The notes under the pieces were generated by a model. The model did not search any database. It was given only the letters and a program-made list of their open reading frames with translations, and was not told the DNA's origin. Shown here in pieces: positions 1-63,796 of a DNA stretch of 64,000 bases (position 1 is the first letter of the stretch; each line of letters begins with the position of its first letter). The stretch is taken from the NCBI GenBank assembly GCA_037379345.1, contig CM074523.1, positions 9,661,507-9,725,506 of the forward strand. Direction: 5' to 3'. The stretch is from Perna viridis (taxonomy: Eukaryota). Made by a program: the position numbers and the translations under genes.

Positions 1-2523
1 TGGAGGAATGAACTTGGTGATATCTCGCAAATGAGGATGATATTTAGCGACTTCAGGAACTGGAATTTCATCTGGCGTATCCAGTAACTGATCATTTTCT
101 AATATACTAGGCAACTCCAGTTCAGTGTTTTGATCGAGAGTTTCTACTACAAGTCCTTCAAGCTTCCTTCCAAAGATTTGAGACTTGGCATTACACGTAG
201 AGAGTATGTAATCAGACATACTAGTTGATCCAAAATAATCAAAGAGTTCTGACTTTCCAAGTGTCCTATTTGATTGATCATCAAGAAGTGCATACACTTG
301 TAATTTTCTGTGGGGTTCATCTCTCAAGAATACGTTCACTAGCACAATCTTGGCACATGACTTGCCTCCAAATCTATCATGACATATTTGTGTACACTTG
401 GCGTTGACTGTTTTTTCTGGTCCTTTATCTTGACCCTGACCTGAGTCATTCGATGGCTCCCCACCATGCTTTGTAGAGCCTACGTTTCTCTGATTTCTAT
501 CCTTGTGGACGTGAAGAGCCGTAGCATGATCAGTCTTTTCACAATAACGACATTTGACAGTTTCATGGCAATCACGTGATATATGAGAGTTCGAATTGCA
601 ACATCGGAAGCATATTCTGTTTTGTCTTTCTATCTTGTATCGATTTCGAAAGAAATGCTCTACAGTCATTTAACGAATGATTTGAGCCATGAATCGGACA
701 TCTTTCCTGGTTTCCACTAGATATAGCCATATTGTTAGTCTCTACTTGTTCTACTGACTCATTTCTACGAACTATTAGCATTGAAAGGTTTACTCCTTGT
801 GGCTACGGCATTCCTCTGTGTCGTTTCAGACGAAAAGCATGGATTGTTCTTTATCGTGCTCTGTTTATGAACAAAGTCAGCAAATATCCTAAAAGGCGGA
901 TAAATAGTACCATTCCTTTCATTGTAATCAACCGCGGTACGAGTCCATCTCTCTTGTAGGTGAATAGGAAGTTTACCAACTATGGGTTTCACTCCTACGG
1001 AACAATCGAAGTATGAAAAAAGACATCCATAGCTTTCATTTTCCTTTATAGAGACGATCTCTGCCAAAATATCTGACAGTACATATAATTTCGAGTAGTC
1101 ATTTGTGATTCGTGGAAAGTTATCAAGTTTCTTTCTAATCGCTTGATCGATGTGTTCGGGGCTGCCATATCGTTCGTCTAATCTAGCCCAAATTAGTCTT
1201 ACAGCCTTTTCTGGATCGTATGTGTTTGCTGCTTTTATGCTCTGAACATGTGATCGAGATTCAGATCCGGTCCATTTCACAAGAAGATCAATTTCTTCTG
1301 ACGCATCAACTCGGATTTCATTGACTATTTTCTTGAAACTAGACTTCCATGAAGGAAAGAATTCAGGACGATCATCAAAGGTATTGAATCTTAAGTGTAG
1401 TAGGTCACGTTTCAACAAAAACGAAGTGAAGTCTGATGCAATCGATTGTATTTTGTGATTGTTGTTAGTATCAGGATATTCGTGCTCTTTCTGATTGTCA
1501 TTGACGGAATTAGGCACAAATGGAGCTGAATTTGGATTCAAATGTGACGAAAACGTAGAAGTAGCAGGCTCAGAATCAAATCGAGTTCGAGGTAAATGAA
1601 AGCTGATTGTCGGTTTATCACGTTTCGATGAAGTTTTGTCCAATACAGGAGGTGTCGAATCTTTAGAAGTTTTTGGATCATTTACAAACGTAACGGGTGC
1701 TAAACGATCGACGTACACTGCTGTCTTTATCTTAGCGTCAAGCGGCGGTTCATAAATGACTTGTGACAGATCCTCCTCAAACTCGGATTCTAAAACACCC
1801 ACGACGGCTTCGGTAGCTGCAGCTTCCTTTTTCATTGAAAGTAAGTCCAAATCCGCTTTCAAATCAGCCTTATGTTTAACTAGCCTAGCTACTTCAACAG
1901 TTTCTTGCATTTCTAACAGTGCATTTTCTTTCAGCAGTGCAGCTTCCTTTTCTGCATAGAAAGCTCTAATTTTTGCTTCTTCAGCCCTGGCCTTTGCCAT
2001 AGCAAGAGATGATCCTGTTGAAGATCTGTTTATGCGATTTACTCCGTTCACGTGAATGTCTACTATGTGATAATCTTTCATCTTCTGTCAAGGCTTTTAT
2101 GTAAACATTGATTCGACGTGAATCTCTCTCCACAATTTGAGAAAACTCGTTTATCTCGTATCGAATTTCTTGAATTGCATCGGCACATTCATCTGTATTT
2201 GTGCGACTCAGGAAATCCATGTACTCCTGGCGTAGTTTGTCAAATTTCGATGTACGTGAAATAATTTCTTTTCTTAAGTCTTCGAGAGAACTTAAGTCAT
2301 TTGAATATGCTTCAATGTTTCTGACGAGAAGTTGTAAATCACTTTTAACAACAGCTAATTTCAAGGTAAAGGTTCTTTTTCTGTTATCGAATAGTTCTTT
2401 CCCTTTAAGAGTCAATTTTCGAACACGAGTCTCTGTAGAAGTTTCAACATACTCCTCAGTATCCTCTAAATCAGGTTGAACTACATTGTCAATTTCTTCT
2501 GACTTATCACCAGAATCTGCCAT
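1..2523 (-). pseudogene. BEL/Pao gag(-pol) of unit C, frameshifted, runs off the window
   Basis: MADSGDK start at 2523; Gag DUF1759-like region (FDDRPEFFPSWKSSF, WARLDERYG); zinc knuckles; protease LLDDQSNRT near 260-285. Private deletions at ~2025 and ~625 relative to the other units. Confidence 0.9.
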
Positions 2524-2570
2524 TTTCGATTGTCACATCCAAATAATATGATGCCAAGTAATCTTCTTAC

Positions 2571-3424
2571 TGTTCTGCCTCCCAATTATTTGCTTCAAAT
2601 AAAAGGACTACAGAAAAGTTAACCACTTTATTACATCGCAATCCTCACAAGTAGCATGGTACATGATATGCTGATGAACGATTGAAATGATGTGTATATG
2701 TAGTCAATTGATGGTAAGAAGCTGAAAAATACAAATAAAGCCCTATGTAACACCGAACTACTAAATATAGCATATAAATAACAATAACATACAAAGTATC
2801 AAAAAACACATTATGACACAAAAAGTCCTTCATACATGATACTTAAAAAATGTTCATAGTTCGACCAAAATATCATTCAAACATGTGAAAAGGTTGGACA
2901 TACACTTAACTTTGTTCAAAGATCAGAAATATTCAAAAATCCAAAAATCAGTGCTTTTGCATTGATAAACTGGCTTTCCATACTTTTGGAAACTCAAAAA
3001 TAGAGGGGTGTTAGACAAAAACTTTACGAAAATTTAACAACATGTTTATGGGTAAAAAGTGTGTAATGCTATACAATATTGTCTAAAATAACATATTGCA
3101 ATCATGAATTCAAGGTAAGTAATGACGTAATCGATAATTTTAGCACAGGTAGGTATGTTGTCGAAATGACATAACAAAAAACGTTGAAACTTCAACAAAA
3201 TGCATAAAACTTATCTATGTTCATAATACTAAATGCAGATATTAATAATTAATGCAAAAACTTACATTGTGCCGGGTTATGGCGACTATGTTTGGTTTGT
3301 TTACGTTTGCATTTCAAAAAATAGAGGATAGAGTCTGTAGGGAATGAAACAAACAATTAATATAAAACAATATCTAGTGCACAAAGACGGACGGTGGAGT
3401 GTTAATAAATGCGGAGCCAGTACA
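2571..3424 (-). repeat. LTR1 (854 bp), shared by units B and C
   Basis: Minus strand begins TGTACTG right after the PPT and ends CAGAACA (imperfect terminal inverted repeat). AATAAA lies near 2627-2632 on the minus strand. Confidence 0.92.
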
Positions 3425-3434
3425 CTCCCCGCCT
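3425..3434 (-). other. Polypurine tract of unit B
   Basis: AGGCGGGGAG directly precedes the LTR TG, just after the pol stop at 3453. Confidence 0.85.
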
Positions 3435-3452
3435 GGCATCTTATGTTGCCAC

Positions 3453-6400
3453 CTAAACATCAACTTTCGTTGGCAATAGTACTACCAGTTCGGTAACTGG
3501 TCTGACGAAATTGTACTTTTTCACACAATTATTGTCAATAGTACGAGCAATTTGTACCTCAGCTTTACGAACTAATTTGTCAGAACTTGGAAACACTTTC
3601 ACAATAATTCCCATTGGCCAAGATAGACGGTTGACTTGTTTGTCTTTGAGCAACACAATATCTCCTTCACTGAGATTGTCAGACGGTTCAATCCATTTCC
3701 TACGACTTTGAAGCGACTGTAAATAATCTATACGCCATCGACGCCAAAACACATCAGCCAAATACTGAACTCTTTTCCGCTGAGCGTGGTACATGTCTTT
3801 ACAGTCATATGAAACGTCCTTTGGAATGAGCACATTCGGTTTTTGAGTTATCAGCAAAGACGGTGTGAGTGGGAATGGCTCATCAGAATCTGACGAAACA
3901 CAAGTTAGAGGTCAAGAGTTAATGATAGCCGACACTTCAGCAAGGAAAGTCACCAATACTTCGTGCGAGAGTTCTTTTTCGGGAAGCTGTGCCATCATTG
4001 AATCGAGGATGCGTCTAGTTGTTTGTATCATCCTTTCCCAGGAACCACCCATAAGTGATGAGTGTTGGGAATTAAAATGCCACTCGATACCATTGTCAAA
4101 CAAGTAGTCTTTGATCGGAGAGTCTTCGACACTAACTGCTTTTATGCCGAGATGATCAGTGGCTCCTACAAAATTAGTCCCACGATCAGAACGAATACGT
4201 TTCACATCACCACGAATAGAGACGAATCTTTTGAAGGCGTTAATGAAACAGGAAGAGCTCATATCTTCAACAACTTCCAAATGAACGCTTCTTGTGGCAA
4301 TACAAGTAAAGATTATCGCCCATCTCTTTGAATTAGCGACTCCGCCTCTCGTGCGTCGTGTTACCACAGACCACGGTCCAAAGGTGTCTATACCTACGGA
4401 GGTAAACGGCGGATCAGGTTTTAGTCGGTCCTTTAGCAAATCAGCCATCATCTGTTGCTCAGTGCTACGACGCAGCTTTCTACACGTGACACACTTGTGT
4501 AAAATCGACGAAACCAATCGCTTTTGCCCAAAAATCCAATAGCCAGCACTTCTAATGGCTCCAGATGTCAAATGACGGCCTTCATGTTGAGTCGTAGAAT
4601 GGTAGAAACGCACTATTAAAGTTGCGATCCAGCCTTTACTTGGCAATATTATAGGGTTTCGTTCATCTTCACTCACATTTGCCATATTGATGCGGCCTCC
4701 TACACGAATGCATCCTGAAGAATCAATGAATGGGTTCAGACCAGCAAGACTGCTGCCTTTTCCGACAGGTAGTTTGTGTTTTAAAGATTCTAATTCGTTT
4801 TCATAGAAATCTTGTTGAACGGCTTTGATGACGAATAACTCGGTCTCTCGAAATGATTCAGTTTTGTCCATAGACTTTCTTCTAGCAATGACTTTAATCA
4901 AGAATGTAACTCCACGAATAAGCGATTCCCAAGATCCAAATCTACAGAAACGATCTGATCCTAACGATTTCTGACTACTAACACTTTTGTTACAGGAAAT
5001 TTCCGCACGCACTTCGTTGTCTTTTTCTGGGTCTTGAAGATCATATGAAGTGTCACTTTTAGAGAGATTCATTTCATCAGTAGACATTTTATCCGGCGGA
5101 CCTTTTAACCACATACTTCTTTCGAGATTTTCCGCGTTTACTGACCGAGTTCCAATATCAGCTGGGTTGCGTTCTGTGTGAACATATGACCACTATGTTG
5201 GTTTTGATAACTTATGAATCTTGGCGACTCTGTTGCTCACATATGTGTAAAATCTACGAGAAGAGTTGTAGATGTAGCCTAAAACTACCTTACTGTCAGT
5301 ATGATATCTTATGTCCGTGAGCGGAATACTGAGTTGATCAGATATAGTCTGTCCTAACTCTGTCGCTAGAACTGCCCCGCATAATTCCAATCTCGGAATT
5401 GTATGTCCATGCTGAGGCGCGACCTTTGCCTTGCCCGTGATAAATCCTAGTCCGGGTTTCTTACTATCAGATTCGAGCTGTAAATATCCAACGGCTGCTA
5501 TAGCCTTCTCGGAGGCATCTGAGTAAATGTGTACAGTCTTGATTTCAGAAGAACTAAACGAAATCGGTACGAACATTCTAGATATTCTCAGATTCTCTAA
5601 TGCAAACAATGAGGTTCTCCAATCGTCCCACTGTTCGAACTGACTAGGCGGAAGTGGGTCGTCCCACGAAGAATCTCCTGATTGAGTCATCACTATTCGA
5701 AGAATAAGTTTTCCACGAACTGTCACAGGCGCTAAAAAGCCTAAAGGGTCGTATATGCTGTTTATTGTGGATAACATACCACAACGAGTATACGGTTTGA
5801 TGCCGTTGTCAATTTGATACATGAAACTATCTGAGCTAAGATCCCAATTCATGCCTAGACTTCGTTGCACGGGAAGAATTTCAGAGTCTCAAGATCCAAG
5901 TCCTTTAGTTCTTTCGCAAGGTCCTCAGAGTCGAAAGCGTTCATGACTTCCTCCTTATTCGAAGATATTTTATGCAGTCGCAAGTTACCAAATTTATGCA
6001 GCGCTTTTTGCGTCCTTTTCATCAAGTCTATCGCAGTTTCTGAAGTTGGCTGTGACGTTAATCCGTCGTCCACATTAAAATCTTTCGACACAAAGTTTGT
6101 CATATCTGATCCAAATTGAAGTTTCCCTTTAAGAGCTGTTCTGCGAAGTCCAAAGCTGGCCACAGCTGGGCTCGGGCTATTGCCAAACACATGGACACGC
6201 ATTCTGTATATGGTAAGCGGTTTGGCAAAGTCATTGTCGGCATACCAAAAAAATCTTAGGTAATCTCTGTGTTCTATGTTGACTTTGAATGCATAAAACA
6301 TTTGTTCAATATCTCCCATCATAGCTACGGGTTCTTTCCTGAATAGAAGCAAGACGCCTAAAAGACTGTTCGTTAAGTCCTGACCACTCAAGAGTACATC

Positions 6401-9400
6401 ATTTAGAGATATGTTATCGTACTTCGCCGATGAGTCGAAAACTGCTCGGAGTTTTCCAGGTTTTTTTGGGGTGGTAAACACCGAAGATAGGTAAATACCA
6501 CTGTTCTTGGTCTTGATCAATTTCTGGTGCAATTTCCGCATTACCTTTGTCAGTATACCTTTCATAAAGGTGAAGAAATGTTCTCGTTTATCTTTACGCA
6601 GATTAGCATCCAACATTCTTGCTCTCTTCAACGCTTGAGTTTTGTTATTAGGCAGACGAGGTCGTTCAAAACGGAACGGAAGTGGGGCTGTCCAATTGTT
6701 TTCGTCGTCTTTCTGAAAATGTTCGTCCATTATACCAATAAACTCTCTATCATCTCTCGATAGTCCCGGTTTATCATCATCGACGGTACGTACGAAAACA
6801 TTTTCGCCTAATCCACTGGCTTTCGATGCCAAAATTGCAGTTTCCTCAACCTTCAGATCATTTTCACACGGCGGAAATATTGAAAGTCGCTCGGTAGCAC
6901 ACTAGTATGTCTTCTTGACACGAGCTTCGTCTGGATAATGTTGTTTTCCGAGACACGTTTCTCCGATTATGGTCCACCCTAGAGGAAGTTTTTGCGCATA
7001 AGGAGAGTCGTGAGGTCCTACTATCTGATCCTGCACATGGTGTGCTTCTATCAAGTCACGACCGATAAGGAGAAGTATCTTAGACTCTGCATTCAATGGA
7101 GGAATGAACTTGGCGATATCTCGCAAATGAGGATGATATTTAGCGACTTCAGGAACTGGAATTTCATCTGGCGTATCCGGTAACTGATCATTTTCTAATA
7201 TACTAGGCAACTCCAGTTCAGTGTTTTGATCGAGAGTTTCTACTACAAGTCCTTCAAGCTTACTTCCAGAGATTTGAGACTTGCCATTACACGTAGAGAG
7301 TATGTAATTAGACATACTAGTTGATCCAAAATAATCAAAGAGTTCTGACTTTCCAAGTGTCCTATTTGATTGATCATCAAGAAGTGCATACACTTGTAAT
7401 TTTCTGTGGGGTTCATCTCTCAAGAATACGTTCACTAGCACAATCTTGGCACATGACTTGCCTCCAAATCTATCATGACATATTTGTGTACACTTGGCGT
7501 TGACTGTTTTTTCTGGTCCTTTATCTTGACCCTGACCTGAGTAATTCGATGGCTCCCCGCCATGCTTTGTAGAGCCTACGTTTCTATGATTTCTATCCTT
7601 GTGGACGTGAAGAGCCGTAGCATGATCAGTCTTTTCACAATAACGACATTTGACAGTTTCATGGCAATCACGTGATATATGAGAGTTCGAATTGCAACAT
7701 CGGAAGCACATTCTGTTTTGTCTGAGGATTCGCTTTCTATCTTGTATCGATTTCGGAAGAAATGCTCTACAGTCATTTAACGAACGATTTGAGCCATGAA
7801 TCGGACATCTTTCCTGGTTTCCACTAGATATAGCCATATTGTTAGTCTCTACTTGTTCTACTGACTCATTTCTACGAACTATTAGCATTGAAAATTTACT
7901 CCTTGTGGCTACGGCATTCCTCTGTGTCGTTTCAAACGAAAAGCATGGATTGTTCTTTATCGTGCTCTGTTTATGAACAAAGTCAGCAAATATCCTAAAA
8001 GGCGGATAAATAGTACCATTCCTTTCATTGTAATCAACCGCGGTACGAGTCCATCTCTCTTGTAGGCGAATAGGAAGTTTAGCAACTATGGGTTTCACTC
8101 CTACGGAACAATCGAAGTATGAAAAAAGACATCCATAGCTTTCGTTTTACTTTATAGAGACGATCTCTGCCAAAATATCTGACAGTACATATAATTTCGA
8201 GTAGTCATTTGTGATTCGTGGAAAGTTATCAAGTTTCTTTCTAATCGCTTGATCGATGTGTTCGGGGCTGCCATATCGTTCGTCTAATCTAGCCTAAATT
8301 AGTCTTACCGCCTTTTCTGGATCGTATGTGTTTGCTACTTTTATGCTCTGAACATGTGATCGAGATTCAGATCCGGTCCATTTCACAAGAAGATCAATTT
8401 CTTCTGACGCATCAACTCGGATTTCATTGACTATTTTCTTGAAACTAGACTTCCATGAAGGATAGAATTCAGGACGATCATCAAAGGTATTGAATCTTGA
8501 GTGTAGTAGGTCACGTTTCAACAAAAACGAAGTGAAGTCTGATGCAATCGATTGTACTTTGTGATTGTTGTTAGTATCAGGATATTCGTGATCTTTCTGA
8601 TTGTCATTGACGGAATTAGGCACAAATGGAGCTGAATTTGGATTCAAATGTGACGAAAACGTAGAAGTAGCAGGCTCAGAATCAAATCGAGTTCGAGGTA
8701 AATGAAAGCTGATTGTTGGTTTATCACATTTCGATGAAGTTTTGTCCAATACAGGAGGTGTCGAATCTTCAGAAATTTTTGGATCATTTACAAACGTAAC
8801 GGGTGCTAAACGATCGACGTACACTGCTGTCTTTATCTTAGCGTCAAGCGGCGGTTCATCAATGACTTGTGACAGATCCTCCTCAAACTCGGATTCTAAA
8901 ACACCCACGACGGCTTCGGTAGCTGCAGCTTCCTTTTTCATTGAAAGTAAGTCCAAATCCGCTTTCAAATCAGCCTTATGTTTAACTCGCCTGTCTGCTT
9001 CAACAGTTTCTTGCATTTCTAACAGTGCATTTTCTTTCAGTAGTGCAGCTTCCTTTTCTGCATAGAAAGCTCTATTTTTTGCTTCTTCGGCCCTGGCCTT
9101 TGCCATAGCAAGAGATGACCCTGTTGAAGACTGTGACGATTGTTTATGCGATCTACTCCGTTCACGTGAATGTCTACTATGTGATAATCTTTCATCTTCT
9201 ATCAAGGCTTTTATGTAAACATTGATTCGACGTGAATCTCTCTCCACAATTTGAGAAAACTCGTTTATCTCGTATCAAATTTCTTGAATTGCATCGGCAC
9301 ATTCATCTGTATTTGTGCGACTCAGGAAACCCATGTACTCCTGGCATAGTTTGTCAAATTTCGATGTACGTGAAATAATTTCTTTTCTTAAGTCTTCGAG

Positions 9401-9637
9401 AGAACTTAAATCATTTGAATATGCTTCAATGTTTCTGACGAGAAGTTGTAAATCACTTTTAACAACAGCTAATTTCAAGGTAAAGTTTCTTTTTCTGTTA
9501 TCGAATAGTTCTTTCCCTTTAAGAGTCAATTTTCGAACACGAGTCTCTGTAGAAGTTTCAACATACTCCTCAGTATCCTCTAAATCAGGTTGAACTACAT
9601 TGTCAATTTCTTCTGACTTATCACCAGAATTTGCCAT
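3453..9637 (-). pseudogene. BEL/Pao gag-pol polyprotein of unit B (multiple stops and frameshifts)
   Basis: CFRCCNSNSHISRDC and CRYCEKTDHATALH knuckles; ALLDDQSNRT protease; RT DIEQMF...FGNSPSP...VDD; RNase H YSDASEKA/TIPRLELCGA; integrase HHCC plus VGIDTFGP/RSDRGTNFVGA/GGSWERMI; C-terminal VQYLADVFWRRWR (DUF5641-like). Confidence 0.95.
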
Positions 9638-9684
9638 TTTCGATTGTCACATCCAAATAATATGATGCCAAGTAATCTTCTTAC

Positions 9685-10537
9685 TGTTCTGCTTCCCAAT
9701 TATTTGCTTCAAATAAAAAGACTACAGAGAAGTTAACCACTTTATTACATCGCAATCCTCACAAGTAGCATGGTACATGATATGCTGATGAACGATTGAA
9801 ATGATGTGTATATGTAGTCAATTGATGGTAAGAAGCTGAAAAATACAAATAAAGCCCTATGTAACACCGAACTACTAAATATAGCATATAAATAACAATA
9901 ACATACAAAGTATCAAAAAACACATTATGACACAAAAAGTCCTTCATACATGATACTTAAAAAATGTTCATAGTTCGACCAAAATATCATTCAAACATGT
10001 GAAAAGGTTGGACATACACTTAACTTTGTTCAAAGATCAGAAATATTCAAAAATCCAAAAATCAGTGCTTTTGCATTGATAATTGGCTTTCCATACTTTT
10101 GGAAACTCAAAAATAGAGGGGTGTTAGACAAAAACTTTACGAAAATTTAACAACGTGTTTATGGGTAAAAAGTGTGTAATGCTATACAATATTGTCTCAA
10201 ATAACATATTGCAATCATGAATTCAAGGTAAGTAATGACGTAATCGATAATTTTAGCACAGGTAGGTATGTTGTCGAAATGACATAACAAAAAACGTTGA
10301 AACTTCAACAAAATGCATAAAACTTATCTATGTTCATAATACTAAATGCAGATATTAATAATTAATGCAAAAACTTACATTGTGCCGGGTTATGGCGACT
10401 ATGTTTGGTTTGTTTACGTTTGCATTTCAAAAAATAGAGGATAGAGTCTGTAGGGAATGAAACAAACAATTAATATAAAACAATATCTAGTGCACAAAGA
10501 CGGACGGTGGAGTGTTAATAAATGCGGAGTCAGTACA
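9685..10537 (-). repeat. LTR2 (853 bp), shared by units A and B; chimeric
   Basis: Near-identical to LTR1 and LTR3. PPT on one side, gag leader on the other. Confidence 0.92.
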
Positions 10538-10547
10538 CTCCCCGCCT
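10538..10547 (-). other. Polypurine tract of unit A
   Basis: AGGCGGGGAG directly precedes the LTR2 TG. Confidence 0.85.
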
Positions 10548-10565
10548 GGCATCTTATGTTGCCAC

Positions 10566-13500
10566 CTAAACATCAACTTTCGTTGGCAATAGTACTACCA
10601 GTTCGGTAACTGGTCTGACGAAATTGTACTTTTTCACACAATTATTGTCAATAGTACGAGCAATCTGTACCTCAGCTTTACGAACTAATTTGTCAGAACT
10701 TGGAAACACTTTCACAATAATTCCCATTGGCCAAGATAGACGGTTGACTTGTTTGTCTTTGAGCAACACAATATCTCCTTCACTGAGATTGTCAGACGGT
10801 TCAATCCATTTCCTACGACTTTGAAGCGACTGTAAATAATCTATACGCCATCGACGCCAAAACACATCAGCCAAATACTGAACTCTTTTCCACTGAGCGT
10901 GGTACATGTCTTTACAGTCATATGAAACGTCCTTTGGAATGAGCACATTCGGTTTTTGAGTTATCAGCAAAGACGGAGTGAGTGGGAATGGCTCATCAGA
11001 ATCTGACGAAACACAAGTTAGAGGTCAAGAGTTAATGATAGCCGACACTTCAGCAAGGAAAGTCACCAATACTTCGTGCGAGAGTTCTTTTTCGGGAAGC
11101 TGTGCCATCATTGAATCGAGGATGCGTCTAGTTGTTTGTATCATCCTTTCCCAGGAACCACCCATAAGTGATGAGTGTTGGGAATTAAAATGCCACTCGA
11201 TACCATTGTCAAACAAGTAGTCTTTGATCGGAGAGTCTTCGACACTAACTGCTTTTATGCCGAGATGATCAGTGGCTCCTACAAAATTAGTCCCACGATC
11301 AGAACGAATACGTTTCACATCACCACGAATAGAGACGAATCTTTTGAAGGCGTTAATGAAACAGGAAGAGCTCATATCTTCAACAACTTCCAAATGAACG
11401 CTTCTTGTGGCAATACAAGTAAAGATTATCGCCCATCTCTTTGAATTAGTGACTCCGCCTCTCGTGCGTCGTGTTACCACAGACCACGGTCCAAAGGTGT
11501 CTATACCTACGGAGGTAAACGGCGGATCAGGTTTTAGTCGGTCCTTTAGCAAATCAGCCATCATCTGTTGCTCAGTGCTACGACGCAGCTTTCTACACGT
11601 GACACACTTGTGTAAAATCGACGAAACCAATCGCTTTTGCCCAAAAATCCAATAGCCAGCACTTCTAATGGCTCCAGATGTCAAATGACGGCCTTCATGT
11701 TGAGTCGTAGAATGGTAGAAACGCACTATTAAAGTTGCGATCCAGCCTTTACTTGGCAATATTATAGGGTTTCGTTCATCTTCACTCACATTTGCCATAT
11801 TGATGCGGCCTCCTACACGAATGCATCCTGAAGAATCAATGAATGGGTTCAGACCAGCAAGACTGCTGCCTTTTCCGACAGGTAGTTTGTGTTTTAAAGA
11901 TTCTAATTCGTTTTCATAGAAATCTTGTTGAACGGCTTTGATGACGAATAACTCGGTCTCTCGAAATGATTCAGTTTTGTCCATAGACTTTCTTCTAGCA
12001 ATGACTTTAATCAAGAATGTAACTCCACGAATAAGCGATTCCCAAGATCCAAATCTACAGAAACGATCTGATCCTAACGATTTCTGACTACTAACACTTT
12101 TGTTACAGGAAATTTCCGCACGCACTTCGTTGTCTTTTTCTGGGTCTTGAAGATCATATGAAGTGTCACTTTTAGAGAGATTCATTTCATCAGTAGACAT
12201 TTTATCCGGCGGACCTTTTAACCACATACTTCTTTCGAGATTTTCCGCGTTTACTGACCGAGTTCCAATATCAGCTGGGTTGCGTTCTGTGTGAACATAT
12301 GACCACTATGTTGGTTTTGATAACTTATGAATCTTGGCGACTCTGTTGCTCACATATGTGTAAAATCTACGAGAAGAGTTGTAGATGTAGCCTAAAACTA
12401 CCTTACTGTCAGTATGATATCTTATGTCCGTGAGCGGAATACTGAGTTGATCAGATATAGTCTGTCCTAACTCTGTCGCTAGAACTGCCCCGCATAATTC
12501 CAATCTCGGAATTGTATGTCCATGCTGAGGCGCGACCTTTGCCTTGCCCATGATAAATCCTAGTCCGGGTTTCTTACTATCAGATTCGAGCTGTAAATAT
12601 CCAACGGCTGCTATAGCCTTCTCGGAGGCATCTGAGTAAATGTGTACAGTCTTGATTTCAGAAGAACTAAACGAAATCGGTACGAACATTCTAGATATTC
12701 TCAGATTCTCTAATGCAAACAATGAGGTTCTCCAATCGTCCCACTGTTCGAACTGACAAGGCGGAAGTGGGTCGTCCCACGAAGAATCTCCAGATTGAGT
12801 CATCACTATTCGAAGAATAAGTTTTCCACGAACTGTCACAGGCGCTAAAAAGCCTAAAGGGTCGTATATGCTGTTTATTGTGGATAACATACCACAACCA
12901 GTACACGGTTTGATGCCGTTGTCAATTTGATACATGAAACTATCTGAGCTAAGATCCCAATTCATGCCTAGACTTCGTTGCACGGGAAGAATTTCAGAGT
13001 CAAGATCCAAGTCCTTTAGTTCTTTCGCAAGGTCCTCAGAGTCGAAAGCGTTCATGACTTCCTCCTTATTCGAAGATATTTTATGCAGTCGCAAGTTACC
13101 AAATTTATGCAGCGCTTTTTGCGTCCTTTTCATCAAGTCTATCGCAGTTTCTGAAGTTGGCTGTGACGTTAATCCGTCGTCCACATTAAAATCTTTCGAC
13201 ACAAAGTTTGTCATATCTGATCCAAATTTAAGTTTCCCTTCAAGAGCTGTTCTGCGAAGTCCAAAGCTGGCCACAGCTGGGCTCGGGCTATTGCCAAACA
13301 CATGGACACGCATTCTGTATATGGTAAGCGGTTTGGCAAAGTCATTGTCGGCATACCAAAAAAATCTTAGGTAATCTCTGTGTTCTATGTTGACTTTGAA
13401 TGCATAAAACATTTGTTCAATATCTCCCATCATAGCTACGGGTTCTTTCCTGAATAGAAGCAAGACGCCTAAAAGACTGTTCGTTAAGTCCTGACCACTC

Positions 13501-16500
13501 AAGAGTACATCATTTAGAGATATGTTATCGTACTTCGCCGATGAGTCGAAAACTGCTCGGAGTTTTCCAGGTTTTTTTGGGGTGGTAAACACCGAAGATA
13601 GGTAAATACCACTGTTCTTGGTCTTGATCAATTTCTGGTGCAATTTCCGCATTACCTTTGTCGAGTATACCTTTCATAAAGGTGAAGAAATGTTCTCGTT
13701 TATCTTTACGCAGATTGGCATCCAACATTCTTGCTCTCTTCAACGCTTGAGTTTTGTTATTAGGCAGACGAGGTCGTTCAAAACGGAACGGAAGTGGGGC
13801 TGTCCAATTGTTTTCGTCGTCTTTCTGAAAATGTTCGTCCATTATACCAATAAACTCTCTATCATCTCTCGACAGTCCCGGTTTATCATCATCGACGGTA
13901 CGTACGAAAACATTTTCGCCTAATCCACTGGCTTTCGATGCCAAAATTGCAGTTTCCTCAACCTTCAGATCATTTTCACACGGCGGAAATATTGAAAGTC
14001 GCTCGGTAGCACACTAGTATGTCTTCTTGACACGAGCTTCGTCTGGATAATGTTGTTTTCCGAGACACGTTTCTCCGATTATGGTCCACCCTAGAGGAAG
14101 TTTTTGCGCATAAGGAGAGTCGTGAGGTCCTACTATCTGATCCTGCACATGGTGTGCTTCTATCAAGTCACGACCGATAAGGAGAAGTATCTTAGACTCT
14201 GCATTCAATGGAGGAATGAACTTGGCGATATCTCGCAAATGAGGATGATATTTAGCGACTTCAGGAACTGGAATTTCATCTGGCGTATCCGGTAACTGAT
14301 CATTTTCTAATATACTAGGCAACTCCAGTTCAGTGTTTTGATCGAGAGTTTCTACTACAAGTCCTTCAAGCTTCCTTCCAGAGATTTGAGACTTGCCATT
14401 ACACGTACAGAGTATGTAATCAGACATACTAGTTGATCCAAAATAATCAAAGAGTTCTGACTTTCCAAGTGTCCTATTTGATTGATCATCAAGAAGTGCA
14501 TACACTTGTAATTTTCTGTGGGGTTCATCTCTCAAGAATAAGTTCACTAGCACAATCTTGGCACATGACTTGCCTCCAAATCTATCATGACATATTTGTG
14601 TACACTTGGCGTTGACTGTTTTTTCTGGTCCTTTATCTTGACCCTGACCTGAGTAATTCGATGGCTCCCCGCCATGCTTTGTAGAGCCTACGTTTCTATG
14701 ATTTCTATCCTTGTGGACGTGAAGAGCCGTAGCATGATCAGTCTTTTCACAATAACGACATTTGACAGTTTCATGGCAATCACGTGATATATGAGAGTTC
14801 GAATTGCAACATCGGAAGCACATTCTGTTTTGTCTGAGGATTCGCTTTCTATCTTGTATCGATTTCGGAAGAAATGCTCTACAGTCATTTAACGAACGAT
14901 TTGAGCCATGAATCGGACATCTTTCCTGGTTTCCACTAGATATAGCCATATTGTTAGTCTCTACTTGTTCTACTGACTCATTTCTACGAACTATTAGCAT
15001 TGAAAATTTACTCCTTGTGGCTACGGCATTCCTCTGTGTCGTTTCAAACGAAAAGCATGGATTGTTCTTTATCGTGCTCTGTTTATGAACAAAGTCAGCA
15101 AATATCCTAAAAGGCGGATAAATAGTACCATTCCTTTCATTGTAATCAACCGCGGTACGAGTCCATCTCTCTTGTAGGCGAATAGGAAGTTTAGCAACTA
15201 TGGGTTTCACTCCTACGGAACAATCGAAGTATGACAAAAGACATCCATAGCTTTCGTTTTACTTTATAGAGACGATCTCTGCCAAAATATCTGACAGTAC
15301 ATATAATTTCGAGTAGTCATTTGTGATTCGTGGAAAGTTATCAAGTTTCTTTCTAATCGCTTGATCGATGTGTTCGGGGCTGCCATATCGTTCGTCTAAT
15401 CTAGCCTAAATTAGTCTTACCGCCTTTTCTGGATCGTATGTGTTTGCTACTTTTATGCTCTGAACATGTGATCGAGATTCAGATCCGGTCCATTTCACAA
15501 GAAGATCAATTTCTTCTGACGCATCAACTCGGATTTCATTGACTATTTTCTTGAAACTAGACTTCCATGAAGGATAGAATTCAGGACGATCATCAAAGGT
15601 ATTGAATCTTGAGTGTAGTAGGTCACGTTTCAACAAAAACGAAGTGAAGTCTGATGCAATCGATTGTACTTTGTGATTGTTGTTAGTATCAGGATATTCG
15701 TGATCTTTCTGATTGTCATTGACGGAATTAGGCACAAATGGAGCTGAATTTGGATTCAAATATGACGAAAACGTAGAAGTAGCAGGCTCAGAATCAAATC
15801 GAGTTCGAGGTAAATGAAAGCTGATTGTTGGTTTATCACATTTCGATGAAGTTTTGTCCAATACAGGAGGTGTCGAATCTTTAGAAATTTTTGGATCATT
15901 TACAAACGTAACGGGTGCTAAACGATCGACGTACACTGCTGTCTTTATCTTAGCGTCAAGCGGCGGTTCATCAATGACTTGTGACAGATCCTCCTCAAAC
16001 TCGGATTCTAAAACACCCACGACGGCTTCGGTAGCTGCAGCTTCCTTTTTCATTGAAAGTAAGTCCAAATCCGCTTTCAAATCAGCTTTATGCTTAACTA
16101 GCCTGTCTGCTTCAACAGTTTCTTGCATTTCTAACAGTGCATTTTCTTTCAGTAGTGCAGCTTCCTTTTCTGCATAGAAAGCTCTATTTTTTGCTTCTTC
16201 GGCCCTGGCCTTTGCCATAGCAAGAGATGATCCTGTTGAAGACTGTGACGATTGTTTATGCGATCTACTCCGTTCACGTGAATGTCTACTATGTGATAAT
16301 CTTTCATCTTCTATCAAGGCTTTTATGTAAACATTGATTCGACGTGAATCTCTCTCCACAATTTGAGAAAACTCGTTTATCTCGTATCAAATTTCTTGAA
16401 TTGCATCGGCACATTCATCTGTATTTGTGCGACTCAGGAAACCCATGTACTCCTGGCATAGTTTGTCAAATTTCGATGTACGTGAAATAATTTCTTTTCT

Positions 16501-16749
16501 TATGTCTTCGAGAGAACTTAAATCATTTGAATATGCTTCAATGTTTCTGACGAGAAGTTGTAAATCACTTTTAACAACAGCTAATTTCAAGGTAAAGTTT
16601 CTTTTTCTGTTATCGAATAGTTCTTTCCCTTTAAGAGTCAATTTTCGAACACGAGTCTCTGTAGAAGTTTCAACATACTCCTCAGTATCCTCTAAATCAG
16701 GTTGAACTACATTGTCAATTTCTTCTGACTTATCACCAGAATTTGCCAT
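10566..16749 (-). pseudogene. BEL/Pao gag-pol polyprotein of unit A (multiple stops, one frameshift)
   Basis: Same domains as unit B. ORF pieces at 16387-16749, 15406-16359, 14014-15237, 13525-13944, 12306-13652, 11025-12227 and 10566-10970. Confidence 0.95.
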
Positions 16750-16796
16750 TTTCGATTGTCACATCCAAATAATATGATGCCAAGTAATCTTCTTAC

Positions 16797-17653
16797 TGTT
16801 CTGCTTCCCAATTATTTGCTTCAAATAAAAAGACTACAGAGAAGTTAACCACTTTATTACATCGCAATCCTCACAAGTAGCATGGTACATGATATGCTGA
16901 TGAACGATTGAAATGATGTGTATATGTAGTCAATTGATGGTAAGAAGCTGAAAAATACAAATAAAGCCCTATGTAACACCGAACTACTAAATATAGCATA
17001 TAAATAACAATAACATACAAAGTATCAAAAAACACATTATGACACAAAAAGTCCTTCATACATGATACTTAAAAAATGTTCATAGTTCGACCAAAATATC
17101 ATTCAAACATGTGAAAAGGTTGGACATACACTTAACTTTGTTCAAAGATCAGAAATATTCAAAAATCCAAAAATCAGTGCTTTTGCATTGATAAACTGGC
17201 TTTCCATACTTTTGGAAACTCAAAAATAGAGGGGTGTTAGACAAAAACTTTACGAAAATTTAACAACGTGTTTATGGGTAAAAAGTGTGTAATGCTATAC
17301 AATATTGTCTCAAATAACATATTGCAATCATGAATTCAAGGTAAGTAATGACGTAATCGATAATTTTTGCACAGGTAGGTATGTTGTCGAAATGACATAA
17401 CAAAAAACGTTGAAACTTCAACAAAATGCATAAAACTTATCTATGTTCATAATACTAATGCAGATATTAATAATAAATGCAAAAACTTACATTGTGCCGG
17501 GTTATGGCGACTATGTTTGGTTTGTTTACGTTTGCATTTTCACAAAAAATAGAGGATAGAGTCTGTAGGGGAATGAAACAAACAATTAATATAAAACAAT
17601 ATCAAGTGCACAAAGACGGACGGTGTAGTGTTAATAAATGCGGAGTCAGTACA
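16797..17653 (-). repeat. LTR3 (857 bp), 5'-most LTR of the array
   Basis: Ends at GTACA 17653 followed by non-element DNA (AAAGT..., candidate TSD half) instead of a PPT. Confidence 0.92.
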
Positions 17654-18022
17654 AAAGTAGTCGTTATCTCATATATTTAGTCACCCTTTCTTCCTCGTTA
17701 CACAGTGTGGTTGTTTATTCGATTTCTGTGCAACATATAAGAGTTGCAAATACAATTTTACTTTATCACTTTCAAATATCTATTGTTCGGATCCGGATTT
17801 ACCATAAATTATTTAACGAAACCAGTACTGCAAAATTCAAATTTAAAATCTCTTAAAACACTGAGGCTCTGTTCGATGTAATGCACATTGTAAAACATCT
17901 CGGAGCTAGATTCGGCTTCCTTTTTCGAAATTTGTGGCTTTGAGTAAGCGACAAACGTCACTTTGCGGGTAAGTTCAATCTCAAAATTTTTCAATGAAAG
18001 ATTCCGATTTGTAAATCCGGTT

Positions 18023-18352
18023 CTGGTGTATTCATCTGCGCCATGAAAACTGATTTGTTCGACGTGTCATAGTTTTCCTTTCCCCTTTCGTCTACCCCTG
18101 ACTTGACTTTTTTATGAGCAACTCGGCGGGTGTTTCTAGAAAAGCAGAGGACGCTTACCCTACCGTTGCACCTGGTCCATGCTCCCAGATATTAGTGGAG
18201 TCCGAGTTGCTCATTTGCCTATGTTACTTTGTATGTATGATTTAAGTTACTTTATGGTCTTTGTTGTGTATGTCTGTTTTCCATGTCTGGTCTTTGTCCC
18301 TGAATTACATTCTTTTGATTACCGCTATAACCTTGGTTCCCTTAATTACTCT
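18023..18352 (+). mobile_element. Penelope-like (Naiad-type) retroelement 3' end, copy 1
   Basis: Matches the RT tail and 3' region of the longer copy at 47239-47930; ends ...CCTTGGTTCCCTTAATTACTCT. Confidence 0.7.
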
Positions 18353-18424
18353 TAAACAACATGTCATATATAAACATAAAATAAGTAAAACATTCAGTTC
18401 TTCCGAACTATCATAAGTTATTTT

Positions 18425-30370: not shown

Positions 30371-30857
30371 CTATACAATCATGGAGTTCAGAATGTGTCT
30401 TAGCATCTCATATTTACAAATACAAACGTATGGTCAATTCAAAGTAATGCAACGATAACAAAGATACCCTCTTTAAATGAGGTTGTCCATACCATATGTA
30501 GGTAACAAAAATAGTAAAATACATTCAAGTATGTAAATTGATAAGACAATTATCAATTAATCAAAAAAGGTTTTTATTTTGTTGTTTCCACCTATCCGTA
30601 ACAGTTATACATTCCTGATGTAAAAGTAATGGTACAGAGTAAACTGCACCAAGTTAGTTCATGTACATGCATTTATTCCTACTCCATAACGAAAATATAA
30701 GGACGACAGTGAAAGACGTACATGTACATCCTTAGTTATTGCCTTATTGTTTCGATCGGTCACGTAGCAACCATCCGGCTTCCGTCTTACTTTTGACTGG
30801 CGGATTTCCATCTTAAACCTGTTTAACTTGTTTTTTTCTATATAAAAGATATATAAA

Positions 30858-31182
30858 AGAGTAATCAAGGGAACCAAGGTTATAGCGGTAATCAAAATAT
30901 GTAATCCAGGGACAAAGACCAGAAATGGAAAACTGACATACACAACAAAGAAAATAAAGTAACTAAAATCACACATACATAGTAACAAAAGCAAATGACC
31001 AACTTGGACTCCACTAAAAACGGGGAGCATGGACCAGGTGCACCGGTAGGGTAAGCGTCCTCTGCCTTTCCAGAAACATCCGCAGAGTTGCTCATAAAAA
31101 GTCAAGTCCGGGTAGACAAACGAGAAAAGGGAAACAGTTACATGTACTATGACCCGTTGAATAAATCAGTTTTCATGGGGCA
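30858..31182 (-). mobile_element. Penelope-like 3' end, copy 2
   Basis: Reverse complement of copies 1 and 4; source of spurious ORFs 30659-31105 and 30892-31095. Confidence 0.7.
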
Positions 31183-36043: not shown

Positions 36044-36586
36044 CCAAACAGACATATTTTTTTTTCATTTACATAATTGTTTTTGATGATCTTCTTATTT
36101 CCAATCCCTACAATAACTTCACTAATTTGCATAGGAGGGGTGGTTTAGTACTGAGTACGACGGAGGCATCAAATATTTAAAACTGCGTATATTTTTGTCG
36201 AGAAGATCAAAGATTGTTTTCCTAAAATATGTGTTCCAAATTGATTCACAAGTCAAATACATTCAATTTGTAGCCATGGATTCATGCTCAATTATTGCAT
36301 CTTTCTGCTTTAAACACTGAGACGTGAATGCGTTTTGAGAATTCACAGTACAAAAATGTATAATGGGCGTGAATTCACTCAAAAGAATGTGATTGTCAAA
36401 TTTATTGGAGGTCATAGTTTTTAATAAAGTCCGAACACTAGGCATATGGACTTGTACCGCCGTGTCGTATGAAGTCATCCTGTCAAATTCAAATCTACAT
36501 ACGTGAAATATTAAGCAAATTAAAATATTGTTGAATAAAAATTAACCCCTGAACTCACATGAAGAAAAAGAACTGTATGTACTATT

Positions 36587-36928
36587 TGTGGATCGTTATG
36601 GTGTATCCATCAGCACCATGAAAACTGATTTATTCAACGGGTCATAGTTTTCCTTCCCTCGTTTGTCTACCCCGGACTTGACTTTTTTATGAGCAACTCG
36701 GCGGGTGTTTCTAGAAAAGCAGAGGACGCTTACCCTACCGGTGCACCTGGTCCATGCTCCCCGTTTTTAGTGGAGTCCGAGTTGCTCATTTACTTTTGTT
36801 ACTTTGTATGTATGATTTTAGTTACTTTATGTTCTTTGTTGTGTATGTCTGTTTTCCATGTCTGGTCTTTGTCCCTGGATTACATTCTTTTGATTACCGC
36901 TATAACCTTGGTTCCCTTGATTACTCTT
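36587..36928 (+). mobile_element. Penelope-like 3' end, copy 4 (near consensus)
   Basis: Encodes VDRYGVSISTMKTDLFNGS* followed by the structured 3' region. Confidence 0.72.
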
Positions 36929-37992
36929 GTATATTTTATTTATATGGTTATAGATTGTTTTGTTTATTCATATAAATAAACCTTTTCTATACATGATAAC
37001 TTTATCAACCCGTTGCGTAAAATGAGGAATACATGTATATATGTTGAATGTAAAGATTTCTCTGCATGAGTTTTGTGTTTTGTAGGATCATTTATTCAAT
37101 ATCCAAGATCTTTCACATAAACTATTATAAAAACGAATAAATCTAATTTTTTCGCCAAACTCATAATATTGAATCTTTGAAACACCAACTTGAAAATTTA
37201 AATTACAAATGAAGTCTTAGTTATGTCACTATTTCTAGATTACAACATAAACCTACAATAACCTAACTCGAATAATTCAGCGCCCTCTCTATCGGTCAAA
37301 CACCTCTCAAGGACTTAAAGGAGCAAACGGAGATCGGCGGATTATAACGACTGATATTATTCGGGTTACATGTAACAATAACTATACTATTTTGTTGACA
37401 ACCGGAAGTAGAATACCCATATTAAACCTGTTTCGCCATATTGGGCCTCTATTTCTGTATTGGTCCAGTTAAGGACATATGGTTTTTAACATTATACATG
37501 TACATGTATTTTACATACATTTCTGGTTATAAAACCTATTAATTTTCAGTGTACAGGCACATGTACATGTATATACATTTATAAATACATGTTAATTTTC
37601 GGTACTGTTTTGATATTACCATTTTACAGGAAATGCAATAATTTGTTTATATTGAAATTTTGTCCGTGTGGAGTACTCAAGTACTCAAGGGGTTCAACAT
37701 TATCATATCCACGTGATTTAAGTCCTGGTTATTTCGGAAGCCTAAAAATGTACTTTATAAAACAGTGGTAAGTTAAAATGTTCAAAAGTACCTTCCTTAT
37801 TCTCTTCGTTCGGTTCCTCCGCCCATACATACATGTACATGTATACTATTATATTATTATTTTACTTTTATATAGTCGTTACCAAAAAATGTTTGAATTA
37901 ATAAATTCTAACTTTAAAATTACACTTCATGTTTCAGTACTTCACACACAAAAATTACACTACTATAATTACATGTTACTCAACAATAGATA

Positions 37993-56407: not shown

Positions 56408-56969
56408 TATGACAAGCCAAAGTGGACAAAAATCAATATTTTATAATATTAGAAAATGAATTTCTAATATTACAAAAACATTTTTTTAATATTAGAAATT
56501 CATTTCGTAATATTAAAAATTCATTTTCTAATATTACAAATTCCTGATTTAGTAATAGTATAAAACATCAGACATTTTGTAATATTACAAACTGAATATG
56601 TAATATTACAAATTGAATATGTAATATTAGAAAATGAATTTGTAATATTAGAAAATCACTTTGCAATATTGCAAAATCAGACACATTTTTTAATATTACA
56701 AAATGATTGTCTAATATTAAAAAATAGTAATTGAATACAAGAAGTCCATTTTCTAATATTAGAAAATCAATTTCTAATATTAAGAAATCGATTTTTAATA
56801 TTAGAAATTCAATCGATTTTTTAATATTAAAAAGAGTTTTGTAATATTAGAAATCTAATTTGTAAAATTAGAAAATGAATTTGTAATATTAGAAAATGAA
56901 TTTGTAATATTAAAAAATCATTTTTTAATATTAGAAAATACTTATTTTTGTCCACTTTGGCTTGGCATA
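56408..56969. mobile_element. Foldback-type MITE, 26-bp TIR, 6-bp TSD (TGGACC), internal ~21-bp repeats
   Basis: TATGACAAGCCAAAGTGGACAAAAAT / ATTTTTGTCCACTTTGGCTTGGCATA (25/26). TGGACC at 56402-56407 and 56970-56975. Confidence 0.92.
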
Positions 56970-57284
56970 TGGACCGGTATCCTATCATCTGTTGTAATTA
57001 TTTTCGTAATTGTAGAATAAGTGCATGGTAAATATTGTTATTGTATGTCTTAGTGTATCACAAGCAAGGAAGCACTCCTTTTATATATGCGACAAGGTCC
57101 TTTTTTCACATATATGTTGTCTTATGTAGTACATTAACTAGCAAACTTGCACCTTGATTAGGGTCATTAAACAAGAGGTCAACTTCCGGAACAGCAGGGA
57201 CTGTTAATTATCCGAAGTTAGATTTGCGGTAAAAAATTGTCGTTTCACTCCCCTGCATAGTAAATATCGCCCGTCAAGTATGAC

Positions 57285-57822
57285 AAGAGTAATCAATGGA
57301 ACCAAGGTTACAGCGGTAATCAAAAGAATGTAATTCAGGGACAAAGACCAGACATGGAAAACAGACATACACAACAAAGAACGCAAAATAACAAAAGGAA
57401 AATGAGCAACTCGGACTCCACTAAAAACTGGGAACATGGACCAGGTGCACCGGTAGGGTAAGCGTCCTCTGCTTTTCTAGAAACACCCGCCGAGTTGTTC
57501 ATAAAAAGTCAAGTCCGGGGTAGACAAACGAGAAAAAGAAAACTATGACACGTTGAATAAATCCGTTTTCATGGTGCAGATGGATACACCATAACGATCC
57601 ACGAGTTCATGATGACGACCATAAAACTTCTGTAGTGATGACTTCAATCATGTAGCATCATAATCCTGTTCCAGAAGCCTATTTGTTAGAGTTCTATGTT
57701 GTTCTGGCAAGTTCTGGCATAACATATGAGTTGTTATATGAACACGCCATACGCATGTGCTGAAGTGATGTTGCCACAGATGAAAGGAAAGTTGTCAATT
57801 CTGAATGAAAAGTCATCACGTT
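57285..57822 (-). mobile_element. Penelope-like element copy 8 with RT C-terminus
   Basis: Colinear with 47239-47820, with small deletions. Confidence 0.75.
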
Positions 57823-59944: not shown

Positions 59945-60111
59945 ACCCATGCTCAGACAAGAGATACTCAGTAATAGATGACTACCGACGTTCCCCAACT
60001 TCATACTATGATTTGTCAGAGCATCGTTTGTGTGACAACAGGATACGCCAAGGCTGGTATAGGTTAAAGGTTAATGGTACTGATGCACAGATTCCTACCC
60101 AATGTGTGAAG
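59945..60111 (+). CDS. D8C (uromodulin/GP2/OIT3-like) domain exon, N-terminal half; VWDE-like secreted protein
   Basis: DPCSDKRYSVIDDYRRS...CDNRIRQGWYRLKVNGTDAQIPTQCVK. Acceptor TAG at 59944 (alternative AAG at 59940); donor GTTGGT at 60112, phase 0. Confidence 0.85.
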
Positions 60112-60529
60112 GTTGGTATAGGTTAAAGGTCAATGTTACTGATGCACAGATTCCTACCCAATGTGTTAAGGTTGGTATTGGTTAAAAGTTAATGGTACTG
60201 ATGCACATATTCCCACCCACTTTGTGAAGGTGTGAAGGTGTTTATTGGTTAAAGGTCAATGGGAATGATGCACAGATATCTACCCAATGTGTCAAGGTTG
60301 TATAGGTTAAAAGTTAATTGTATTGATGCACAGATTCCTACCCAATGTGTGAAGGTTGGTATAGGTTAAAGGTCAATGTTACTGATGCAGATTCCTACCC
60401 AATTTGTTAAGGTTGGTATATGTTAAAGGTCAATGTTACTGATGCACAGATTCCTACCCAATGTGTGAAGGTTGGTATAGGTTAAAGGTCAATGTTACTG
60501 ATGCACAGATTCCTACCCAATGTGTTAAG
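60053..60529 (+). repeat. 59-bp tandem repeat x8 made from the exon 3' end
   Basis: Unit GTTGGTATAGGTTAAAGGTCAATGTTACTGATGCACAGATTCCTACCCAATGTGTGAAG; the first unit is coding. Confidence 0.95.
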
Positions 60530-61104
60530 GTATGTACATGCAATCTATATGTTGTGGTTTATACCAGGTAAATTTACTGCAAACCAGAGTTAATTTTGCA
60601 ATAGACATGAACAAAATATTAATATAGAGACCTGGATATTCTTTAAATAGAACATTATATATAGTATGATTTGATTTATCGACAAAAAATATGAAAGGGC
60701 CAGCAGTGGCATGATTCAAATATTTGAAAATAAAAAAAAAAACATGGCCTAGATGTGAACACACAAAACAGAGATGATCTACATTCACAATGTAGTGAAC
60801 ATAACAAAAAAGATTGCACACAAGACCAAAGATAAGGGAAACAAGACACCACATGAATATTGCAGATTTAATAGACTTTGTGAATGTGAATTGATGGTAA
60901 AACCATAAAAGAAGACAGTGCTAAATATTTCCTCTTTACAGAATTGTAACATGAAATGAAATTTTTGCAGGATCATTGCATATGTATTTATACACACCAA
61001 GCCTTCTCTTTTAGAAATCAGGTTTGTTAGTGGTCACAGCTTTTAGAATTAGTACACTACCAAAGTTTATGTGTGTACAATTATTGTTTTATTCTTAATT
61101 ACAG

Positions 61105-63288: not shown

Positions 63289-63796
63289 TGAGCAACTTGG
63301 CGGGTGTTTCTAGAAAAGCAGATGATGCTTACCCTACCGGTGCACCTGGTCCATGCTCCCAGTTTTTAGTGGAGTCCAAGTTGCTCATTTACTTTTGTTA
63401 CTTTGTATGTATGATTTTAGTTACTTTATGTTCTTTGTTGTGTATGTCTGTTTTCCATGTCTGGTCTTTGTCCCTGGATTACATTCTTTTGATTACCGCT
63501 ATAACCTTGGTTCCCTTGATTACTCTTTGATTACCGCTATAACCTTGGTTCCCTTGCTTACTCTTTGATAACTGCTATAACCTAGGTTCCCTTGATACTC
63601 TTTGATTACTGCTATAACCTTGGTTCCCTGGATTACTCTTTGATTACTGCTACAACCTTGGTTCCCTTGATTACTCTTTGATTACCACTATAAACTTGGT
63701 TCCCTTGATTACTCTTTGATTACCGTTATAACCTTGATTCCCTTGATTACTCTTTGATTACCACTATAACCTTGATTCCCTTGATTACTCTTTGAC
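63289..63796 (+). mobile_element. Penelope-like 3' end, copy 9, with terminal 38 bp reiterated x8
   Basis: Same 3' region as copy 4. TTTGATTACCGCTATAACCTTGGTTCCCTTGATTACTC is repeated from 63488 to 63790. Confidence 0.8.

Follow-up and report, generated by a model that had tools for sequence, protein, structure and literature searches.

In the long terminal repeat (LTR) retrotransposon Tf1, the mRNA's initial 11 bases pair with the primer-binding site (PBS), after which RNase H cuts the RNA between bases 11 and 12 (PMC7175516, PMC4600332, PMC5341516; model in PMC5341516), as summarized in the reviews from which we take these facts. Tf1 and Tf2, Tj1, and the Tf1/sushi group of Ty3/gypsy elements lack a tRNA-type PBS, and so does the element described here, a BEL/Pao retrotransposon in a 64,000-nucleotide stretch of the Perna viridis genome (contig CM074523.1, positions 9,661,507 to 9,725,506, forward strand), hereafter called the window. 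As in the Tf1/sushi group, an 11-nt piece of what appears to be the element's own R region complements a PBS just past the LTR, with about 100 to 150 nt and a structured R-U5 loop between the two. The window element nevertheless differs from that group in being BEL/Pao by its Pfam signature, not Ty3/gypsy (chromovirus), and from Tf1 in that its complement is predicted to lie about 60 nt into the RNA rather than at the first mRNA bases. In the clade to which it belongs, the complement is also non-contiguous until an LTR intron has been spliced out, a few intron-less lineages excepted, and the duplex spans 11 to 17 nt instead of the 11 nt of Tf1. By analogy with Tf1, the element probably primes its own reverse transcription with an internal RNA primer assembled by splicing.

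Two further groups of elements offer a comparison. Like tRNA-primed LTR elements and retroviruses, the window element has its PBS 0 to 2 nt past the 5' LTR and a polypurine tract before the 3' LTR, whereas the PBS of its clade does without the TGG and covaries with the element's own LTR instead of with a conserved host RNA. Spliceosomal introns are known from the Ogre elements of legumes and, as env splicing, from gypsy-like elements, where they occupy the internal region and function in protein expression. Host splicing acts on element RNA in those cases as well, but the BEL/Pao intron lies in the putative R region of the LTR, is present twice in the RNA, and interrupts the predicted primer sequence. 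Our full-text literature searches (self-priming, BEL/Pao, PBS, LTR introns) found no description of a primer assembled by splicing, and the BEL/Pao surveys and related papers that we read do not address the priming of these elements (PMC3118150, PMC554778, PMC2996953); a PBS goes entirely unmentioned in the surveys. Relative to known self-priming, the new features are the superfamily, an internal instead of a 5'-terminal primer, and assembly by splicing.

The element lies on the minus strand, and in its sense LTR1 (2571 to 3424; 854 bp, TGT..ACA; delimited by self-BLAST, the array end, and a copy on contig C15) is followed directly by the putative PBS GTAAGAAGATT at 2560 to 2570. The LTR contains an intron of 544 nt (2722 to 3265, minus strand; GTAAGT...polypyrimidine-CAG) with the donor cacAAT/GTAAGT, the slash marking the splice point and the G standing at 3265, and the acceptor tttttcag/CTTCTTAC, after which exon 2 begins at 2721. 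In the LTR transcript, exon 1 (3266 to 3325, minus strand, the 5' limit being approximate and dependent on a predicted start site) ends in AAT (3268 to 3266), which supplies the 11-mer's 5' part. Exon 2 opens with the 8 nt CTTCTTAC (2714 to 2721, minus strand), which form the 3' part and whose final C pairs with the first post-LTR base. Once joined by splicing, AAT and CTTCTTAC are complementary to the 11 post-LTR bases at 11/11 positions, whereas unspliced RNA offers 8/8 only, and CTTCTTAC is the sole 8-nt complement of the post-LTR sequence within the LTR. Approximately 150 nt separate the joined 11-mer from its complementary site in the RNA. An AATAAA polyadenylation signal in exon 2 (2627 to 2632, minus strand), also present in exon 2 of the relatives that were read, would place the 11-mer in R and leave a U5 of about 40 nt. 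The same motifs recur in LTR2 (9685 to 10537, minus strand; donor 10378, exon 2 at 9835, PBS at 9684) and in LTR3 (16797 to 17653, minus strand; 17490, 16947, and 16796), both delimited by self-BLAST. An earlier note on this DNA had proposed that the intron junction creates the exact complement of the PBS. Its donor, acceptor, 544-nt intron, and PBS coordinates in LTR1 all hold, the gain from 8 to 11 of 11 matches on splicing is confirmed, and the arrangement is intact, as it had stated, at the positions given for LTR2 and LTR3.

Such a match could in principle arise by accident. As a control, mock PBS 11-mers were drawn from internal regions, and the GT..AG-split 11-nt complements were counted per LTR. 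The mock rate was 0.1-1.2% per LTR when any GT/AG pair was allowed and at most 0.03% (3e-4) with consensus-like sites, and the complement of the real PBS was found within the consensus-site junction set in 13/13 lineages so tested. Chance is a negligible source of the junction-PBS match. The 8-bp helix closes both the minimum-free-energy and the centroid folds of the window RNA (z = -3.4). As a separate observation, the end of exon 1 (e.g., window 3266-3273) is conserved in molluscs and Priapulus, reading roughly CCAC-A-G/A-T before the donor and lying outside the 11-bp duplex in most families; it is a possible second processing site.

Removal of the intron was directly visible in assembled sequencing contigs aligned to window positions 1-6000. 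The segment 2722-3265 is missing, with exact edges, from contigs of runs X1, X2, and X3 (study P1) and of X5 (study P2); these contigs join 2721 to 3266 at an unambiguous position in four runs from two studies and supply the junction reads that the earlier note had asked for. The edges of the skipped segment read CT..AC on the plus strand, that is, GT..AG in element sense, and unspliced contigs were found besides the spliced ones. In the X5 contig, the spliced LTR is joined to unique DNA flanking the array, where the reference retains the intron. In the X3 contig, the spliced LTR leads through 5 nt of flank into a sequence on C1 that is genomically preceded by a polypyrimidine tract and AG, and the X2 contig carries the same flank, unspliced, followed by GTATGT. 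Because X5 reads through into the flank and X3 is spliced onward to C1, we regard these contigs as derived from LTR-containing transcripts. The X2/X3 contigs represent an LTR-driven chimeric transcript of a polymorphic insertion absent from the reference, in which GTATGT is the donor to a host exon on C1 (L010, about 1520-1535; C1:14334349, minus). They stop near 3319-3325, with a TATA-like TATATTAA about 35 nt upstream, which suggests a transcription start about 60 nt upstream of the donor.

Two minor features of these contigs can be noted. The X2/X3 contigs contain a 17-nt insertion at window 2602-2615, near the presumed poly(A) site, which is a local duplication of adjacent sequence. A second splice donor at the PBS (ACA/GTAAGA) was considered and rejected: contigs do exit the element at 2569-2571, but the extra letters are the flank of the array (X5) or the flank of the LTR copy absent from the reference (X2/X3), and the transcript contigs gave no evidence that ACA/GTAAGA is used as a donor.

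The comparison of relatives revealed that the complementarity is conserved while its letters change. Relatives from the same genome were collected by a pol search, after which 5' regions and some 3' LTRs were retrieved; the others came from named species (protein matches followed to contigs), assembly contigs, and metagenome contigs, most of the last without a complete 5' LTR. The split design with different letters was present in seven other Perna viridis families, eight named species (seven molluscs and one priapulid), three Logan contigs, and about eight metagenome lineages, and at least 25 related lineages in total carry a complement split at the junction. In every lineage with a definable LTR end, a consensus GT..AG intron is present, and the joined exon ends perfectly complement the post-LTR bases over 11-17 bp, while the letters change from lineage to lineage on either side of the intron. 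Among 13 lineages, nine of the 11 duplex positions are variable, and all stay Watson-Crick. The covariation that the earlier note had put forward as a check is therefore borne out in each of these lineages, and its 11-nt duplex stands for the window element, with 11 to 17 nt found elsewhere.

Within Perna viridis, the PBS matches its own junction at 11/11 positions in the window element and in the families with GTAAAAAGATA (L043), GTAAAAAGACT (L044), GTGAAAAGACT (L050), GTAAAAAGCCT (L061), and GTAAAACCTCT (L055), while L049 matches at 14/14 and L057, whose PBS ATTTACAAATTAA follows a 2-nt spacer and is completely different from the others, at 13/13. Among the named species, matches of 11 were found for Pecten (GTAAGAAGCTG, L062), Haliotis (GTAAAAGGACT, L064), Priapulus (GTAAGAAGTTG, L065), and Magallana (GTAGATAACTG after a 2-nt spacer, L063), and the match lengths in Mytilus, Mya, Pinctada, and Littorina were 11, 12, 13, and 14, respectively. 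Assembly and metagenome contigs gave 11-17 nt, including 15 in L075 and up to 17 in the metagenome locus L091. The intron divides the predicted primer as 3+8 in most molluscan families, as 4+7 in Pecten, Priapulus, Magallana, and others, and as 8+5 or 6+5 in two lineages. Pairing begins with the base that adjoins the LTR or, in two lineages (L057 and Magallana), 2 nt further on. RNAalifold, applied to the stretch from exon 2 to the PBS in six own-genome families, returned one helix only, namely the 8 bp, in which two columns are compensatory and none is broken. Both L082 and L099 have weak donors, and a match in L148 was judged to be due to chance. The distant families L054, L059, L060, and L041 displayed no such pattern, and, their LTR ends being undefined, they were not scored as negatives. 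The Haliotis element (L064 1-2627 and 10501-10867) is inserted in a long satellite of 39-bp period, which extends past it in either direction.

Copies without the intron were also present. The L050 family has an 825-nt intron, and from both LTRs of a sister element (5' LTR L051, 3' LTR L053) exactly this stretch is missing, leaving its 11-mer contiguous. The precision of this loss in both LTRs indicates that spliced RNA was once reverse transcribed and integrated. Contiguous 11-mers without an intron occur as well in the metagenome lineages L086/L088 and L141. Since such copies and lineages exist, splicing is not obligatory for every member; the earlier idea of a primer built by splicing is thus supported by the spliced contigs and the covariation, but not as a requirement throughout the clade.

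These observations can be assembled into a model patterned on Tf1. Transcription would begin within the LTR, some 60 nt upstream of the consensus donor, and the R region would hold the spliceosomal intron. Removal of the intron would fuse the terminal 3 nt of exon 1 with the opening 8 nt of exon 2, creating the 11-nt complement of the bases that follow the 5' LTR, and this 11-mer may pair, in cis or in trans, with the PBS, which lies about 150 nt downstream in the same RNA; pairing in cis would close a structured R-U5 loop. On the analogy of Tf1/Tf2, the element's RNase H would cut the RNA where the duplex ends on its 3' side, after the last paired base, and the new 3'-OH would prime minus-strand DNA starting at the last base of U5. 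Strong-stop DNA would then end at the cut, and all upstream LTR sequence, including the intron, would be copied from the 3' R. RNA spliced at the 5' end but unspliced at the 3' end would yield intron-containing progeny, whereas RNA spliced at both ends would yield intron-less LTRs. Plus-strand copying of the primer would rewrite the PBS in each cycle, maintaining the complementarity.

Among the alternatives, the one that survives best holds that the junction-PBS duplex is a conserved RNA structure and that another RNA primes, the duplex acting either as a splint or as a switch for packaging, dimerization, or translation. In the splint version, the post-LTR sequence would hold the exon 1 end against the beginning of exon 2, favoring splicing of the 5' intron copy only. 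The two exon ends do pair with neighboring stretches of a single downstream sequence, the PBS sequence follows only the 5' LTR copy in the RNA, the helix closes a stable fold, and no priming has been observed, all of which would fit a structural role. However, in every lineage the duplex stops where the LTR ends (0 or 2 nt from it), a position that a primer needs but a splint or packaging helix does not. Because this LTR boundary is the site of the 3' end of a minus-strand primer, we read the duplex as a primer and not as a structural helix. Furthermore, any other primer would have to bind the same bases, which differ widely among families (the window element versus L057 versus Magallana), and the intron-less lineages retain a contiguous 11-mer, so the pairing matters even without splicing. 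We consider a purely structural or splinting role unlikely.

A second alternative invokes a start of the Tf1 type at or next to the 8-mer (about 2721), in which case the RNA would begin with CUUCUUAC and the intron would lie in U3, irrelevant to priming. The TCAG before the 8-mer resembles an initiator element, the 8-bp helix forms already in unspliced RNA, and an ordinary U3/R/U5 layout would result. Nevertheless, PBS positions 9 onward covary in every lineage with the final 3-9 nt of exon 1, the 8-mer is preceded across the splice joint by at least 49 nt of exon 1 in the transcript contigs, and the precise intron loss in L051/L053 places the donor inside RNA that was transcribed and reverse transcribed, leaving this start site very improbable. 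Least credible of all is priming by a small host RNA, a tRNA fragment or another, that ends in ...CUU(C/U)UUAC, with the LTR match as mimicry or chance: many lineages do share a PBS starting GT(A/G)AA, and copia and Ty5, which use internal tRNA fragments as primers (half-tRNA priming), offer a precedent, but PBS positions 3-11 differ between families and always match their own junction, the PBSs of L057 and Magallana are unrelated, and no multicopy host locus with an extended complement emerged. The letters of the PBS change with the end of each family's own exon 1, and therefore a single host primer cannot explain them. A pattern search of the genome, a weak test of the tRNA-fragment reading, found no enrichment of the extended PBS complement (14-mer; 304 matches against 558 in the control), and its seven exact matches were scattered. 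The window has no tRNA genes and no tRNA-type PBS; the post-LTR sequence starts with GTAAG, and the nearest TGG is 13 nt off, too far to define the LTR end.

Several points weigh against priming by a spliced internal primer and must be set beside this evidence. Unlike that of Tf1, the complement is internal, and with at least 49 nt of exon 1 upstream of the junction, priming would require either a primer some 70 nt long or an additional cut. The intron was also spliced in a 3'-LTR context (X1 contig), which bears on the model's supposition that the 3' intron copy stays unspliced. No contig joins the spliced leader through the PBS into gag on one molecule, and the Logan contigs that reach the 5' LTR (L072-L079) are unspliced or circularly assembled. 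Neither an RNA 3' end at ...CTTAC nor primer-linked strong-stop DNA was seen in the contigs, which can reveal neither RNA ends nor abundance, and runs X1, X2, X3, and X5 are classed as RNA by a guess of the search tool only. The window copies have broken open reading frames (ORFs), and very few copies of the family are present in the Perna viridis genome. Finally, the lineages are related, so that lineage counts overstate their independence and the evidence lies in the letter changes only.

Beyond the window element, we lean slightly toward a broader proposal, in which a large and old BEL/Pao clade licenses reverse transcription by splicing: only RNA without the cap-proximal LTR intron would have a complete self-primer, and the intron would be re-inherited from the unspliced 3' copy. 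The clade ranges over bivalves, gastropods, a priapulid, and further marine hosts. As with the choice of start site in Tf2 (PMC5341516), a decision at the RNA level would determine whether a usable self-primer exists, separating replication-competent from replication-incompetent RNA; the start site is chosen in Tf2, whereas intron removal would be the choice in the BEL/Pao element. If true, this would be the first replication primer built by the spliceosome and would identify an undescribed mode of priming for a BEL/Pao clade, taking self-priming past the Tf1/sushi group and tying retrotransposition to the spliceosome. A retroelement could then keep a functional leader intron, which is otherwise paradoxical, and the persistence of an intron in a terminal repeat would have a mechanism. 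The model predicts that the RNA has a defined 3' end, that strong-stop DNA likewise ends at a defined point, and that the progeny are a mixture of intron-containing and intron-less copies. In practice, the junction/PBS rule locates LTR ends and splice sites precisely in these families, while pipelines that rely on a tRNA-type PBS only would miss or misfile such elements. Independence from a tRNA primer could also matter for silencing by tRNA fragments (PMC7472051).

The placement of the LTR ends on which the comparison depends follows from the structure of the locus. Self-BLAST showed that positions 1-17653 of the window form a minus-strand tandem array of the element that repeats about every 7112 bp, ordered in element sense as LTR3, internal region, LTR2, internal region, LTR1, and then an internal region leaving the window. 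The array totals four LTRs and three internal regions, and the units are 98-99% identical with reading frames broken in all. LTR3 is the 5'-most LTR, and a genome search located the fourth outside the window (C13 upstream of the window, L004, L008), ending at the exact equivalent of 2571. A 5-bp target-site duplication, ACTTT, lies at 17654 to 17658 (minus strand) with its partner copy after the fourth LTR, and because this single duplication flanks the whole array, we conclude that the array derived from one insertion. A polypurine tract, AGGCGGGGAG, stands immediately upstream of LTR1 (3425 to 3434, minus strand) and precedes every LTR of the array; its ..GGGGAG/TGT motif is also found in relatives. 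The 5' end of the LTR is set by the array end at 17653 together with this tract, and the 3' end by the fourth LTR together with the separate copy on contig C15.

A gag-like ORF (1981 to 2523, minus strand) starts with an ATG at 2523, 47 nt past the LTR. In the internal region of the middle unit (3425 to 9684, minus strand), the gag-pol frame is distributed over at least five ORFs with Pao (PF05380) and integrase-like segments. The Pao domain was detected in two window ORFs (E = 7.7e-41 and 1.4e-39) and is present in all listed relatives, while the window ORF at 3915-5114 scored 23.1 bits against PF00665 (rve), below the cut-off of 32.6; the relatives carry PF00665 and DUF5641. The TGT..ACA ends, the 5-bp duplication, and the polypurine tract are BEL/Pao traits as well. 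Taken together, the domains, the broken frames, and the polypurine tracts identify a degenerate LTR retrotransposon of the BEL/Pao type, the ends of whose LTRs are firmly placed.

In the second copy of the element, on contig C15 (L005, L007 2869-9363; about 10.46-10.47 Mb), the 3' LTR is split by 6.5 kb of non-coding, repeat-rich DNA in which transposon domains are absent and which has no clear target duplication. The insertion lies exactly (+/-1 nt) past the final 11-mer base, at the point predicted for primer cutting and strand transfer, and its position could be a coincidence or the footprint of an aberrant strand transfer. Elsewhere in the window, a repeat of about 340 bp that looks like a SINE or MITE is present in six copies in both orientations with 85-98% identity (18007-18353, 30840-31182, 36584-36945, 47235-47574, 57279-57602, and 63289-63531). 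Three tandem arrays of short period (about 41, 59, and 38 bp; 50559-50985, 60049-60536, and 63471-63795) and one large imperfect palindrome (56408-56969) were also observed.
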